A stretch of 63,925 bases of DNA, filler included, from Octopus bimaculoides (Eukaryota), in the NCBI RefSeq assembly GCF_001194135.2. It is 6 parts of 6 records of this genome, joined end to end, with 100 filler letters (N's around TTAATTAATTAA, not from the genome) between each part and the next. Parts side by side here need not be neighbours in the genome. Positions count along the whole stretch, not along the records: positions 34,513 to 58,344 come from NC_069003.1; 5 more parts are not named here. One strand, 5' to 3'. The notes under the pieces are model-generated. The model ran no database searches, had not been told where the DNA came from, and worked only from the letters and a program-made list of their open reading frames with translations. The position numbers were made by a program, and so were the translations under genes. Shown piece by piece: positions 37,132-57,868 of the stretch (within the stretch, counting starts at the first letter, position 1; each line of letters opens with the position of its first letter).

Positions 37132-37481
37132 TTACCTAGTGGGGCATTTGGAATACTGTAGAAATATATGATCAATGGCCATATCATTTGTATAATGTCC
37201 ACTTCGGATTGCAAGGAATGATATCCTCATGTTTTTGCTGGTTGGGAGCGTAACACATTTATAATGCCACAACTTTCCTTGGTCTCCTGTTTTCTGCCAG
37301 AGTATAGTGTCATGTGCAATGTCTAACTGATTGACCATCAGCTGCAACGTGCCCATCTGTTCGCCATACATGCTGTAATAAAAGGTAAGGCTTGCAACAG
37401 TGCTGACTGTGAAATTTGGTGAAGTGAATGCTGCAATGTCACCTTCTTCTCCTTTCGATCCCTCAGTATACATGTATGATC
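37132..37481 (-). CDS. Exon s: MAM domain 3, C-terminal part; probable last coding exon
   Basis: SYMYTEGS...LTFYYSMYGEQMGTLQL...LWQKTGDQGKLWH...DMAIDHIFLQYSKCPTR*; the stop overlaps a possible AG|GTAATT donor. Confidence 0.88.
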
Positions 37482-38360
37482 CTAAAATGGAAACAAAAAT
37501 ACTGATAATATCCTCAATTCTAGAATCATAGTAAACACAACAGCAGATGATAAACTCTCAGTCACTGTCTTGATTTGCAGTTTTAGGGATCACATTAATC
37601 TAATACAATTGTTTGGGTAGGACTCTTACAGCAACTCCTTTCTTAACATTCTTAAAGTCAATCACAATAATCACTAAGCAGGAAACAATCGATAAATTTA
37701 CTCTGTTTATTGCACAAATTAATCTCCACACAAGTATAAAATGTCAAGACAAAATTCTTACTCAAGGAACACACACACACACGTGTATGTAAACATACAC
37801 ACACACACACACACACACACACACACACACACACACACATACATGTATTACATTTATGAATATATATAAATACATATATGCATATATATATATATATATA
37901 TATATATATATATATACACACACACACACACACACACATACACACACACACACACACACACACACAAAAGCAAACAAACAAACAAACAAACATGCATATA
38001 TGCATTTGTAATTTGGAGCCTGAATGGTAGAAACATTCATTATGGTAGCCATAAATGTAAGGGCCAATTCTTATAATGGTAATAAAATGCAATGATGGAA
38101 GCAATGAAGATCCTTTTTGCTAAGGGTCCAATTTTGAATATGAATTCTGAACTCCTATCAATATGCAAGCAGAAGAATGATAAAACCTCCTTGTTACAGT
38201 TCAATGGATGCTACACTTCAGTCACTTTTATATCTAAAATCTTGTATTTTTATGTTCCTACAGAATATGTATGGACTGTAATTTTGATATATACGTGAGT
38301 GTGTGTGCATATACATATATGTATGTATATATTTATATGCCATTCAGGTGAGATACATAC

Positions 38361-38507
38361 CAGTCTTGTTAAAGGGGTCATTTGATGGCCCTGTATTAGC
38401 AGAAGGTGTTGTACCCGATACTCGAATCCATGTGAATTTTGTGCCATTACTCTTATAACCGCATTTGAACTCCTTTTCAAAAGAGCAGTTTACATTTTTG
38501 TAAATAT
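38361..38507 (-). CDS. Exon r: MAM domain 3, N-terminal part (not in ORF track)
   Basis: IYKNVNCSFEKEFKCGYKSNGTKFTWIRVSGTTPSANTGPSNDPFNKT (TPSxxTGP motif); phase 1-1. Confidence 0.92.
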
Positions 38508-38848
38508 CTGAGAAAGTAGAAACAAAACAGATTTACAAGTATGTCTGTGTAAAGAATACACAATTGCAAGAGAGGGAAGAAAGAATAAAATAATTTCAAA
38601 TTATATGAGGCATAATTTTCATGACAATCTACAACATGGCCATGAATTCAAACTTTCCTGTAGCTATTGTTCTTAAGAATGACTTAATCTGTCTGATTAT
38701 ATGCATTGCTAAGTGACTATCAGCATATAAAAGTGTTACAAGATTTCAAAGGAACAACAGAAAAGAAATGGTGGGGAAAATAAAGAAAGAGATACATTAA
38801 AACGATATAATTCTTAGTTGCGAGATGAGAGAAAAATCAAAAACTTAC

Positions 38849-38959
38849 CACAATGCCGAATCTCATCACTCCCATCAGTACAGTCATTTTCTCCATTGCA
38901 AGTCTTTGAGTAACTTATGCAGATGTCAGAGTCACATTGGAATTCATCATTTCTGCATT
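38849..38959 (-). CDS. Exon q: LDLa repeat 5 (not in ORF track)
   Basis: CRNDEFQCDSDICISYSKTCNGENDCTDGSDEIRHC; phase 1-1, 111 nt. Confidence 0.92.
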
Positions 38960-39175
38960 CTAATGATAAAAAGAGAATTGATTAATCAAGGATTATGAAG
39001 AAAAGATAAGAGAAATTAATTCTAGTGTCTATGTGTCTGTATTATAATATAATATCAAGAAGACAGATTGACCAAACAGTTTCAACACAGTAGTTTCTAT
39101 CCACGACCTTGTACTTACTACACATAGCTAAAACTTATGTCAAGATTTTGCCAACATGTGTCAGATAAAACTTAC

Positions 39176-39286
39176 TGCATTTTTTCTCATCACTGGAATC
39201 AAGGCAATCAATAACACGGTCACACTGCTTAGATGAATGGTAGCACATATCTCCAGATTTACAAGGCAACCATTCTGGTTCACAAC
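39176..39286 (-). CDS. Exon p: LDLa repeat 4
   Basis: CEPEWLPCKSGDMCYHSSKQCDRVIDCLDSSDEKKC; phase 1-1, 111 nt. Confidence 0.92.
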
Positions 39287-54529: not shown

Positions 54530-54685
54530 TGTGGTTGGCGTTAGGAAGGACATCCAGCCGTAGAAACCCTGCCAAACCAGACTGGAGTCTGGTGCAGCCC
54601 TCCAGCTGGCCAGCCCTGGTCAAACCGTCCGACCCATGCCAGCATGGACAACGGACGTTAAACGATGATGATGATGATGATGATG
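54530..54685 (+). mobile_element. SINE 3' tail ending in (GAT)n, CpG intact
   Basis: gttggcgttaggaaggacatccagccgtagaaacc..cccatgccagcatggacaacggacgttaaacgatgatgatg. Confidence 0.7.
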
Positions 54686-54735
54686 ATAAGATAATTTGAT
54701 TGAAAAGACTAAAAATAATAACTTGAACCACTTAC

Positions 54736-54850
54736 TCCATACCAAGCTTCTTGCAGGCTTTAATGCCAAATTCCTCACTCATTGGACTGTAACAGACTGG
54801 GTAAAACTGTTCATTGACTCGGATGCTTAACATATCTTCTTGAATGGATA
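54736..54850 (-). CDS. Exon c: SRCR domain, N-terminal part (not in ORF track)
   Basis: SIQEDMLSIRVNEQFYPVCYSPMSEEFGIKACKKLGM matches the VC...AC..LG pattern of TMPRSS-type SRCR; phase 1-2, gtaag donor. Confidence 0.85.
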
Positions 54851-55827
54851 CTTCAGAAGAGAGAGAGAAAAAAAGAGACACATTTAAGCTTTTTTGTTTG
54901 TTTTTTTATACATGTCCAATACACTATAATTATTATGAAATAACTGCCACGATGTTAAAGCAAATGATATTAGATATAATAAGCTCAAATTTCAAACAGA
55001 GATGAGAGAGAGAGGTGGGGGTGCTTTTAAAATCTGAAACCTTGAAATATTAAAAGGTAACAGCTATGCTATAATTTCTAGTAGGAGAAAAGTCCAAGAC
55101 GTCTTCTCGACTGCTTGTAAATTAGGCAAGGGAAATAACTCTGTTTGTTCCACCTGTTTAGACCACGAAGACACACAATTAATGCTTTCAACTTGGAATG
55201 TCTTTATAAGAATTACTTATAAACCAGTGGCCCCATAAAGAGTATACGCTTCGAATTTTTATTTAAAAATCTCTGCTTCCTGGATGTAAGTAACCAATTG
55301 TAGAAAAGGGTACCGAATCACTAAGGTCGATAGTAAATTGCTACGGTAATCAACTCCAGAGCCTTTCATGAAAGCCTTTGCATAGTTCTTCACACTGCTA
55401 GAAATAGAAGTCAAATCTCCAGCAACTCATTCCACTCTAACTTGCTAAAGTGAAGAAATAACAAATTAAATGATGTAGTCCTACATATAGTATTTCTGAA
55501 TAAAAGAAAAAGACAGGTGAACATAGCAAGAATGCTTTTGACCACAAGTGTTGTTGATCATGGCTAGCCTAGGGCTAAATATTACAATACCCACTTCCTG
55601 TAAAGTCTCATACATTAAATGTATCTAGTGTTTGTAGTGCGATCAGTAATAGGACTGACAGGGAGTTGGGAAGAATATGAGAGATAATTCCAAAAAGAAG
55701 GTTTTGTAAGAGGTTTTCCCAGTAATTAAACCAAACTGCCACTAGGAGGATAAAGGGCAAAACTGAAATATTGACGAATGGAGAAAGGGAGAAAGAAAGT
55801 GAGAAAGAAAAAGGTAGTTCCACTTAC

Positions 55828-55938
55828 CACACGACTGTTCATCAGAACCATCAGGACACTGAATCATGCCATCACATCGCAGGCCACTATTTATACAGGA
55901 GAAGTCATCACATACAAATTGGTCAGATTTGCACTTCA
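55828..55938 (-). CDS. Exon b: LDLa repeat 2
   Basis: KCKSDQFVCDDFSCINSGLRCDGMIQCPDGSDEQSC; ttttcag acceptor, gtaag donor, phase 1-1, 111 nt. Confidence 0.93.
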
Positions 55939-57760
55939 CTGAAAAGCAACAACAATAAGAAACAATAAGTATAATAGTTAAATAAATAAAAGAAACAAAG
56001 CAAAAACACTGCCCTGACAAATAACCAGTTTTTGAGGACTATTCAGTATTTGCATTTTCGGAATTTACATCTCTCTCTCTCTCTCTCTCTCTCTCTCTCT
56101 CTCTCTAAGAAAAAAGAAAAGAGTGTTTTTATAAGATGAAATTTACCTAGCGATGTAAGTATTTTAGCAATTACTTCCAAGAACTCTACCAACATTAAGG
56201 TGTGAATGCAGATTAACATGATGTAGAAAGCAAGAGTTATCATTGTTACTGATAACATCAATGGATCAAAGCAGGAAAGTATTTATGAAGGTGAATTTGT
56301 GATCAGCTTTGAAGATCTTAATCACTTCTCTGAGATTGTTAATATCTTTGCAAAAAGTAAGAAGTTTAGAAATTCTTCCTTTCACCTCTTCCCTAAAATC
56401 TTGATTTGTATTTGTAAAAGAAGTCATTAAGATAATCAACATTTTCTTCAAAACTGGAAATGGGTTTCAAAATGTAGTGTGGGGAGAGAAGCTAAGGGCC
56501 ATCAGGTTGAGATTAGGGTTAGATTCCATATGACCCTTTCCCCATAAACTGAAAAGCAGGGAAGTGTCATCTCCCTGCAGACCTGCCATTTCCTTTACTG
56601 ATTTCCTTCAAAAAGATCAAGAATTTTTATTTCTAATTAGTATTTTTGGTTATTTTCCTTTCATCTCCAAGAAGTTTACATGAACCCAGATTTGATCTAA
56701 CTCTGCCACACCTTGTTATCAAAGGGTCAGGTGGCCTTATGGCTTGGGAATAAAATTTGGTAGCTGGAAGCTATGAGGAAGCTTGTCATGTGTGTGTGTG
56801 TGTGTGTGCGTGTGTGTGTGTACATGCATGTAGCATTGGCATATATATGTGTGTGTGTGCATGTGTAAATACACACACATTCACACACACATAGAGGAAT
56901 ATGCTTGAAGAAGCAGAAATGGAAGACAGAGAAGATGAAAAGAAGAAACAGAAGTAATTGATATTGGAAGGTCGATGGTAACAAGAGAAATGATAGAGAA
57001 AATAGAGAATAGAAGGGTAAAGATGTCTGATGTGAGAAAATAGTGATAGGGGAGAGAAACTAGGAAAGAAACTGAAAGACGATGAAAGAATTGAATAAGT
57101 AAATAAGAGGTATGAGAGAAGGAAAGGGCAGAAAGTTGATGAGAGATGGCAAAAAGAAAAGAAAAAAAAGAAAATAGAGGATGACAAGAGATGGGGAAAT
57201 ACAGAAGAGAGAAGATGACATGTAACAAGTGATGATAAAAGACAAATAAGAGCAGGTGAAAAAAGATACAGGTATTAAAAAGAAAAAAAAAACACAGAAG
57301 ACTACATCCATTTGATGATAGATTATGAACAGATGACACATAAATAGAATATGGCAGAAAGTACCTTTTGCCAGAGTATGAGAGATAAGGGTCAGACAAA
57401 TATCAACAGAGGAGTATCCCTGCCTTCCTGAGTTAGTTTCCCCACCACATTACTTAAAAATTGTGGCAGAGGCCTTGGTCTCAGGACCACTCAAGTCTAG
57501 AAACTGAGGTTGGGGGTAAAGCAAAGACAGGCTCCCCATAGAAAATCCAGCTCCCAAAAAGCCTCATGATAGCAAAGGAGAATGGGCATCAACCAGCCTA
57601 AAGTTTGGGGTAGGCAGCACCTGCCTACCTTGGTTGCTATGGCATTGAGGTAAATCCGATCATCCCCCATTAACGGGGGACGAAACCCGGATTTAAAACA
57701 CTGGATGACGATGAACAAAGATATCACATGTTAGAAAAGAAGATAAAAAAGAAGACTTAC

Positions 57761-57868
57761 GACAATTGGCTTCATCTGATGCATCACTACAATCCGATTC
57801 TCCATCACAAACCCATTCTTTCATGATACATTTCTTGTTTGTGCAGGCAAAATCATTGTAGGAACAAG
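57761..57868 (-). CDS. Exon a: LDL-receptor class A repeat 1
   Basis: [35 protein letters not shown]; tgtag acceptor, gtaag donor, phase 1-1, 108 nt. Confidence 0.93.

Follow-up and report, generated by a model that had tools for sequence, protein, structure and literature searches.

The window of this study is a stretch of 63,925 nucleotides (nt) from Octopus bimaculoides (assembly GCF_001194135.2; six genomic parts joined by filler letters), and its subject is a mosaic serine protease gene in the part that derives from NC_069003.1. Within this piece of DNA (positions 34513-58344 of the window; 35% G+C), the minus strand carries a row of short open reading frames (ORFs) with LDLa, SRCR-like, trypsin and MAM signatures. 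We read an exon chain from stop-to-stop ORFs and the phases of splice acceptors and donors on that strand, and obtained 20 exons, from 57868 down to 37132, which join into one continuous open frame of 1057 codons. Its translation matches residues 498-1554 of XP_014777695.1 with 100% identity; this O. bimaculoides protein is named 'atrial natriuretic peptide-converting enzyme-like' and assigned to LOC106874472. Other models of the same gene are XP_052831925.1 (newer, LOC106874472, 2084 residues) and A0A0L8GVV4 (2015, 1084 residues). The exons in the window are the C-terminal 1057 residues of the already annotated LOC106874472, and are laid out as follows:

57761-57868, minus strand: exon E1, LDLa (Pfam Ldl_recept_a, E 5.6e-14), with phase 1 introns on both sides
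55828-55938, minus strand: exon E2, LDLa, phase 1-1 (Pfam E 1.8e-10)
54736-54850, minus strand: exon E3, first third of SRCR_2, a TMPRSS/hepsin-type SRCR-like domain (34.9 bits over E3, E4a and E4b)
52068-52181, minus strand: exon E4a, middle of SRCR_2 (tblastn 100% to XP_014777695.1 residues 609-646)
51416-51702, no strand: assembly gap within the E4a/E4b intron, adjoining (AC)35
50957-51006, minus strand: exon E4b, end of SRCR_2 (splice sites and match to XP_014777695.1)
50266-50455, minus strand: exon E5, start of the protease, with Cys1 (50453-50451), the activation site VPL↓IVGG with Ile16 (50393-50391) and His57 in TAAHC (50276-50274)
49075-49346, minus strand: exon E6, protease, with Asp102 in NDIALL (49219-49217) and Cys122 (49159-49157)
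48200-48336, minus strand: exon E7, base of the S1 pocket, with Ala at residue 189 (48211-48209) and Val at 190 (chymotrypsin numbering, from an alignment to factor XIa)
46825-46981, minus strand: exon E8, end of the protease, with Ser195 in GDSGG (46975-46973), Val216, Gly226, the C-terminal helix ..LPWIEEKT and a phase 1 donor G/GTATGTAG
46470-46824, minus strand: E8/E9 intron, 355 nt, with three AATAAA and one ATTAAA
46368-46469, minus strand: exon E9, LDLa directly 3' of the protease (Pfam E 1.3e-6)
44435-44593, minus strand: exon E10, N-terminal third of MAM1 (splice sites, homology, Pfam)
42865-43191, minus strand: exon E11, rest of MAM1 (MAM 1-158/158, E 4e-16)
41765-41893, minus strand: exon E12, divergent LDLa (Pfam 15.8 bits, cut-off 24.1)
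40970-41104, minus strand: exon E13, first part of MAM2 (splice sites and homology)
40484-40620, minus strand: exon E14, middle part of MAM2 (splice sites and homology)
39627-39840, minus strand: exon E15, last part of MAM2 (MAM 1-158/158, E 7.7e-16 for E13-E15)
39176-39286, minus strand: exon E16, LDLa (Pfam E 1.4e-7)
38849-38959, minus strand: exon E17, LDLa (Pfam E 9.6e-13)
38361-38507, minus strand: exon E18, first part of MAM3 (splice sites and homology)
37132-37481, minus strand: exon E19, rest of MAM3 (MAM E 2.3e-32) and the stop codon TAA at 37134-37132

The order encoded in the window is LDLa-LDLa-SRCR_2-S1 protease-LDLa-MAM1-LDLa(divergent)-MAM2-LDLa-LDLa-MAM3. On the spliced product, Pfam recovered the full trypsin profile (PF00089, 1-220/220, E 5.7e-54) and three full-length MAM domains (E 7e-63 overall), and a domain-by-domain scan returned five LDLa above threshold and a sixth, weak one in E12. 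SRCR_2 scored 34.9 bits against a cut-off of 27, assembled from three exons (54850-54736, 52181-52068 and 51006-50957) where the preliminary description of this DNA had seen one. Overall, this set of matches is far above chance. The E12 LDLa keeps its six cysteines and has partly lost the acidic calcium-binding residues (CNILNHC), while its position is conserved in relatives. The protease domain is followed by 641 residues in the same frame, tallied in our listing as three MAM domains plus one LDLa and four more LDLa, against four LDLa in the order just given. The order of exons and domains proposed earlier stands, as judged by Pfam, except that the LDLa exon E9 (46469-46368) between the protease and MAM1 had been skipped. 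Splicing from 46825 directly to 44593 is phase-compatible, but we rejected it as the main form since it bypasses E9, an exon that every annotation and each of the 20 relatives compared retains. A further peculiarity is a fifth cysteine in octopus MAM1 (E11, ~43170-43180; RYICGYS, RYICGHS in O. vulgaris), which is absent from eight other mollusc sequences (alignment A1) and is reminiscent of the inter-subunit disulfide of meprin.

Of the 19 introns, 18 are of the GT-AG type. The remaining one, between E5 and E6, uses a GC donor (AG/gcaagt at 50264-50265, minus strand; the join reads TAAHCV-SGFKPE), and this accounts for the frame problem that a hand assembly restricted to GT donors meets after TAAHCV. 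The assembly gap at 51416-51702 falls inside the E4a/E4b intron (52067-51007) and hides no coding sequence, since the flanking splice sites are both phase 2, two O. bimaculoides annotations agree on the joined peptide ..FGPAVLK/NNCSNSQ.., which is colinear in O. vulgaris and free of insertions there, and the match to the SRCR_2 profile runs unbroken across the junction (12-96 of 99). At its 5' end the chain is truncated, with E1 beginning in phase 1, and some 500-1000 further N-terminal residues lie off the piece, comprising a putative membrane anchor, an SEA domain, a mucin-like stalk and Frizzled domains. The genomic locus of O. vulgaris is colinear with the octopus gene; it holds one additional LDLa exon (L003, 32660-32770) about 2.3 kb upstream of the E1 counterpart. 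This exon is absent from XP_014777695.1, and XP_052831925.1 reads through intron sequence upstream of E1. The O. bimaculoides models are probably imperfect just past the 5' edge of the piece.

That the protease and the MAM/LDLa arm belong to one gene is well supported. The three octopus models (XP_014777695.1, A0A0L8GVV4 and XP_052831925.1) share the join with the O. vulgaris protein CAI9739445.1, and phase 1 introns bound all the domains, the protease unit at both its ends included. The Logan contig L001 (5079 nt, from the gastropod data set SRR26439020) contains a single ORF at 77-4834 that encodes Frizzled-LDLa-Trypsin-MAM-LDLa-MAM-LDLa, with a product 60% identical to the Littorina orthologue; as 4.7 kb of ORF run without introns, this contig derives from mRNA. 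A second contig, L002, displays the same continuity of protease and arm for a paralogue. In E9 we found neither a start codon nor a signal peptide of its own, and the junction motif W-I-x3-T-x-C-x-F-x-C is free of indels in 19 of 20 species. Taken together, the gene models, the O. vulgaris orthologue, the phase 1 boundaries, the intronless transcript contig and the conserved junction argue for one gene. The alternative of a separate MAM/LDLa gene, which the preliminary description had considered against its own proposal of one mosaic gene, thus gives way to continuity in the three octopus models, in O. vulgaris and in L001.

The same junction raises a different possibility, namely that the locus makes two products and that a classical corin-like protease, ending after E8 through retention of the E8/E9 intron and polyadenylation, occurs instead of or alongside the form with the arm. 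Upon retention of this intron, an in-frame TAG would be reached two codons beyond the E8 donor (..WIEEKTGM-stop), and the four poly(A) hexamers in its 355 nt, the first of them 44 nt in, amount to about 11 per kb compared with 1.9 per kb across the 19 introns, a roughly six-fold density (Poisson p ~0.005 before correction for 19 introns; after correction suggestive only). O. vulgaris keeps both stop and hexamers, yet the intron as a whole is 96.6% identical and the two species share ~97% identity even within introns, which leaves this conservation without discriminating power. On the other side, splicing continues into E9 in all three O. bimaculoides annotations and in the O. vulgaris model, orthologous transcripts are continuous, and the junction and the following LDLa are constant in length in 19 of 20 species. 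We therefore regard the two-product account as unlikely: the arm-less form is very unlikely to be the sole product, and may at most occur as a minor additional isoform.

Outside the window, the full protein is predicted to start with a short cytoplasmic tail and a signal-anchor (the hydrophobic stretch VPLLVLFLVSVIATAAALAVIM after ~75 N-terminal residues in the full models P0121/P0002, read by eye), followed by an SEA domain with a G↓SVII autoproteolysis-type motif, a Thr-rich mucin stalk and tandem Frizzled domains. PF01392 (Frizzled) is present in the precomputed domains of both octopus proteins (P0001/P0002), and three to five Frizzled copies map upstream of the piece. This combination of N-terminal anchor, SEA, Thr-rich stalk and Frizzled suggests an apical mucin-like membrane protein. 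The same elements, i.e. the SEA domain with its GSVII motif and the long Thr-rich mucin-like stalk, would also fit a protein that is shed after SEA cleavage or stem proteolysis and acts as a soluble protease of mucus or lumen, its arm tethering it to mucins, food or microbial particles. Proteins with similar names have been listed in proteomes of shipworm crystalline style ('ANP-converting enzyme'; ANP, atrial natriuretic peptide) and octopus skin mucus ('MAM and LDL-receptor' proteins). However, for neither could a link to the octopus gene be established, and the supplements of two octopus mucus papers contained no match when searched by accession. The mussel 'CORIN' A0A6J8CJ45, which is up in starved gill, was rejected as an orthologue: it lies outside the orthologue cluster, which in Mytilus coruscus comprises A0A6J8ANI5, A0A6J8AK11 and A0A6J8AN17. 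Besides, the two halves of a cleaved SEA normally remain associated, as in MUC1 and transmembrane serine proteases. A shed form is thus conceivable but doubtful; it concerns where the protein resides and is otherwise compatible with the explanation favored below.

The S1 peptidase itself is apparently catalytically competent, as predicted from its residues. The triad His57/Asp102/Ser195, Gly193, Asp194, Ser214, the IVGG-type N-terminus, Cys1 and Cys122 are present and conserved in 20 of 20 sequences compared. The earlier expectation of an apparently active protease with a Cys1-Cys122 tether and about 600 residues of MAM/LDLa modules behind it agrees with the intact triad and cysteines and with the ~640 residues counted. 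The closest solved structures are the catalytic domains of factor XIa, plasma kallikrein, enteropeptidase, plasmin and TMPRSS2 (E ~1e-39 for factor XIa and kallikrein), with the enteropeptidase structure 7wqx matched at E 6e-36. By alignment, the S1 pocket carries Ala189, Val190, Val216 and Gly226, and across the family residue 189 is Ala, Ser or Thr (Asp in 0 of 20), while Val216 is found in 18 of 18 molluscs. The activation bond is Leu↓Ile (VPL↓IVGG), Met↓Ile in O. vulgaris, and 19 of 20 species have a non-basic residue at its P1 position. Because of these four pocket residues and activation after Leu, we infer an elastase- or chymotrypsin-like specificity, not a tryptic one as in corin. As the activation P1 is itself hydrophobic, the activator would most likely be the enzyme itself or a protease of like specificity.

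A contrasting view of the same domain is that the protein serves mainly as a receptor or adhesion scaffold, with the protease fold reduced to a binding module as in serine-protease homologues and the function borne by the Frizzled, LDLa and MAM modules. Non-catalytic modules make up ~85% of the protein, and a paralogue (L002/P0018), found in the same transcriptome as L001, has kept stem and arm in the full Frizzled-LDLa-protease-MAM layout after losing His57 (TSAQC), Cys191 and the GDSGG context; from these losses it reads as a pseudoprotease version of the family, and it shows that such an architecture can outlast catalysis. In the octopus protein and in all 20 orthologues or relatives compared, on the contrary, nothing is lost from the triad, Gly193, Asp194, Ser214, the IVGG-type N-terminus or the disulfide cysteines, which points to selection for activity and makes a mainly non-catalytic role improbable.

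The arrangement is not confined to Octopus. The order (SEA-mucin)-Frizzled(n)-LDLa(2-4)-SRCR_2-protease-LDLa-MAM1-LDLa-MAM2-LDLa-LDLa-MAM3 is constant in 18 molluscs of three classes, i.e. two octopuses, nine bivalves (Sinanodonta, Potamilus, Mytilus spp., Mizuhopecten, Pinctada, Mya, Mercenaria, Ruditapes and Mactra) and seven gastropods (among them Patella, Aplysia, Lymnaea, Littorina, Bradybaena and Plakobranchus), plus related contigs. Other molluscs usually add a linker and a last LDLa after MAM3, and this LDLa is absent in Octopus. We define the family by the order SRCR_2-protease-LDLa-MAM1-LDLa-MAM2-LDLa-LDLa-MAM3, the junction motif, Val216 and a residue other than Asp at 189, and the octopus protein has all of these. 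Each of its MAM domains finds its best match in the MAM domain at the same position in other species. Between the two octopuses, the arm domains are 92-97% identical and the protease 97%; towards the other classes, identities are 24-40% for the MAM domains and 41-45% for the protease domain. Since the arm is conserved like the protease between octopuses, and MAM order and identity are held across classes, the arm is under constraint.

Beyond molluscs, protease-LDLa-MAM1 is covered by one BLAST alignment in 20 species, two of which are the annelid Owenia and the nemertean Tubulanus. In these two, additional LDLa repeats and another one or two protease domains come after the protease-LDLa-MAM unit. 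In the brachiopod Lingula the layout is protease-LDLa(14)-SRCR-protease. If these models describe real single genes, the mollusc arm would correspond to a spacer between the proteases of an older multi-protease protein, of which molluscs would have kept one protease and the spacer. Read to its extreme, this ancestry might mean that the MAM/LDLa arm is a functionless leftover. The proteins of these two worms, with their protease-LDLa-MAM units followed by LDLa runs and one or two more proteases, are what such a view would build on. The arm domains are nevertheless fixed in number, order and identity across cephalopods, bivalves and gastropods, same-position MAM domains are best matches, and cysteines and core residues are invariant, so we consider a mere leftover highly improbable.

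A second cephalopod family also came to light, represented by a Logan contig (P0034) and a protein of Argonauta hians (P0046) and called 'MALRD2-like'. Its layout is MAM..-LDLa-SRCR-LDLa-LDLa-protease-LDLa-MAM-LDLa(n). With its internal protease flanked by MAM domains at either end, it indicates that internal proteases with MAM/LDLa tails recur in cephalopods.

How, then, does the octopus protein relate to known proteases? Membrane-anchored serine proteases are usually described as a stem with the protease at its far tip. Judged against the type II transmembrane serine proteases (TTSPs), the octopus protein has the modular stem and the Cys1-Cys122 pair, but its protease is not at the extreme C-terminus. 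The earlier assignment of LDLa-SRCR-protease to a generic TMPRSS/enteropeptidase-type cassette was incomplete; the SEA-mucin-Frizzled portion outside the window renders the cassette corin-like instead. With vertebrate corin and Drosophila Corin it shares Frizzled, LDLa and SRCR-like domains ahead of an S1 protease and the Cys1-Cys122 tether, next to a putative membrane anchor read by eye, and the database name 'corin-like' stems from this combination of Frizzled, LDLa, SRCR and protease. Corin has a C-terminal protease with Asp189 that is activated after Arg, and a stem of Fz1-LDLa(5)-Fz2-LDLa(3) (Fz, Frizzled) without SEA or mucin stalk. The octopus family, by contrast, combines SEA and mucin with a Frizzled tandem joined by Thr-rich linkers and only two to four LDLa, has Ala189 and Val216 in the octopus protease, which is activated after Leu, and extends for ~640 residues after the protease. 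The octopus protein thus departs from corin in domain arrangement, in Asp189 and Arg activation, and in the C-terminal placement of the protease.

Enteropeptidase (TMPRSS15) resembles it in bringing together SEA, LDLa, MAM and SRCR with an S1 protease, as the sole classical TTSP to do so, and one bivalve orthologue is annotated 'Enteropeptidase'. Yet its MAM is single and N-terminal to a C-terminal, tryptic protease (DDDDK↓I), and it contains CUB domains in the order SEA-LDLa-CUB-MAM-CUB-LDLa-SRCR-protease, whereas no CUB match was found in the octopus protein by Pfam or in the precomputed domains, and its three MAM domains lie C-terminal to a non-tryptic protease. Drosophila Nudel is a very large mosaic with an internal S1 protease and LDLa repeats on both flanks, and Pfam DUF1986 ('Nudel') gave a weak overlapping match on the octopus protease domain. 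Nudel, for which we imply no orthology, differs in being secreted to the perivitelline space, in lacking MAM, Frizzled and SRCR, and in having another protease-like domain that is inactive. Polyserases (TMPRSS9) and ovochymases, which occupy the hit lists below the true orthologues, likewise have non-terminal S1 domains, but continue with more proteases or CUB domains, while the mollusc proteins have one protease and then a fixed LDLa/MAM array. Finally, alternating MAM and LDLa domains as in the octopus arm are known from MALRD1 and MAMDC4 (endotubin). These are type I or secreted proteins without a catalytic domain, whereas the octopus array is joined to the C-terminal helix of a protease through an invariant five-residue linker. 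On its sequence, the octopus protein is best classed as a variant of the membrane-anchored mosaic S1 proteases, and not as corin.

We therefore favor, as the likely explanation, a single gene for a type II transmembrane mosaic serine protease of the corin-like kind, with an internal catalytic domain that bears a MAM/LDLa arm. The zymogen would be cut at VPL↓IVGG, and the new Ile16 N-terminus would pair with Asp194. After cleavage, the stem would be held by the Cys1-Cys122 disulfide and the MAM/LDLa arm would remain covalently joined to the catalytic chain. Both Cys122 and the C-terminal helix of a chymotrypsin fold are found on the face opposite the active-site cleft. With both attachments at the back of the fold, the arm would leave the active site free, and might act as a rigid exosite, a ligand-capture unit or a module for oligomerization or adhesion. 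MAM domains mediate homophilic or oligomeric binding in meprin and RPTPmu, and LDLa domains bind ligands in a calcium-dependent manner in lipoprotein receptors. Such an arm would place the protease on substrates, matrix, mucus or a neighboring cell. The preliminary description had proposed that adhesive or ligand-binding modules may target the protease, in gut, immune system or egg coat.

Several points weigh against this picture or temper parts of it. The octopus join itself rests on gene predictions and orthologous transcripts, and the in-frame stop and poly(A) cluster after the protease exon leave room for a candidate isoform that may lack the arm. Membrane anchoring was read by eye from sequence outside the window. 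The activation P1 differs from species to species (L, M, V, I, Y, F, T, S, D, K), and neither a single conserved activator nor simple self-activation is therefore established; residue 226 is variable too (G, N, V, L, S, M), and specificity may thus vary with lineage. An AlphaFold model of protease-LDLa-MAM1 (10-sequence alignment; predicted local distance difference test score, pLDDT, 52.7; predicted template modeling score, pTM, 0.48) was too poor and was not used, and the arm geometry hence rests on textbook knowledge of the fold. As for the evolutionary scenario, the multi-protease proteins of Owenia and Tubulanus are predicted gene models and may be fusions of neighboring genes.

Going beyond the likely explanation of an internal protease with an arm, one might speculate, with little confidence, that protease-LDLa-MAM marks an unrecognized spiralian family of mucin-stalked, non-tryptic membrane proteases, with the catalytic domain placed between a ligand-binding stem of Frizzled type and an adhesive MAM arm and proteolysis gated by contact, through homophilic MAM binding to a neighboring cell or ligand capture, and with the arm perhaps switched in octopus by E8 splicing versus polyadenylation.

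The sequence is not new, in that the gene is annotated and the architecture visible in public domain databases. A full-text literature search retrieved no paper describing a protease of this layout and none citing the octopus accessions. The preliminary description had envisaged that the architecture could prove common and already characterized; common it is (bivalves, gastropods, cephalopods), but characterized, as far as the searchable literature goes, it is not. Orthologues go by the database names 'corin', 'atrial natriuretic peptide-converting enzyme-like', 'acrosin', 'enteropeptidase', 'MALRD2' and 'uncharacterized'. A report of 'Corin' specific to the light organ of Euprymna could not be linked to the octopus gene. 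These automatic names are misleading. Both the S1 pocket and the activation site speak against tryptic processing of the corin kind, so functions inferred from the names in transcriptome and proteome papers on molluscs call for caution. More generally, a whole phylum, together with annelid and nemertean relatives, keeps an internal protease bearing a long and probably rigidly attached MAM/LDLa array. Should this arm serve to recruit substrates or in adhesion, it would represent a natural case of an exosite engineered onto the C-terminal side of the chymotrypsin fold, as well as a second route, beside polyserases and Nudel, to an internal protease in a mosaic protein.

At the 3' end of the gene, the TAA at 37134-37132 overlaps a splice donor (AG/GTAATT), from which the newer O. 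bimaculoides annotation and O. vulgaris splice to a terminal micro-exon of three codons (..CPTR-LIS and ..CPTR-PIS, respectively). We did not find the ..LIS micro-exon in the piece, where homology with O. vulgaris stops at a 100-N gap (36873-36972). The true 3' micro-exon and the untranslated region are therefore missing from the piece, and, with the annotated terminal exon lacking, the TAA is probably a read-through stop over a real donor. Just 3' of the gene, 34522-36862 is a low-complexity tandem repeat of ~2.3 kb with (TCGT)/(ACGT)-type units and periods of 4, 8, 28 and 99, and this region also includes an (ATAA/AT)n block.

The remaining features of the piece are repeats. In the E3/E4a intron, 54040-54324 (minus strand) holds a reverse transcriptase relic with a YADD motif (..NNAHTYADDITC..) and a weak RVT_1 match (E 0.039, 14 bits), probably a decayed non-LTR (long terminal repeat) retrotransposon. 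Rfam and tRNA scans of the piece gave no matches. Two intronic repeats, 43545-43629 and 44890-44974, form an 81% identical pair on either side of E10, and a repeat at 54531-54684 matches two sites, in both orientations, downstream of the end of the O. vulgaris gene. These short dispersed intronic repeats look like SINE-type (short interspersed nuclear element) sequences.

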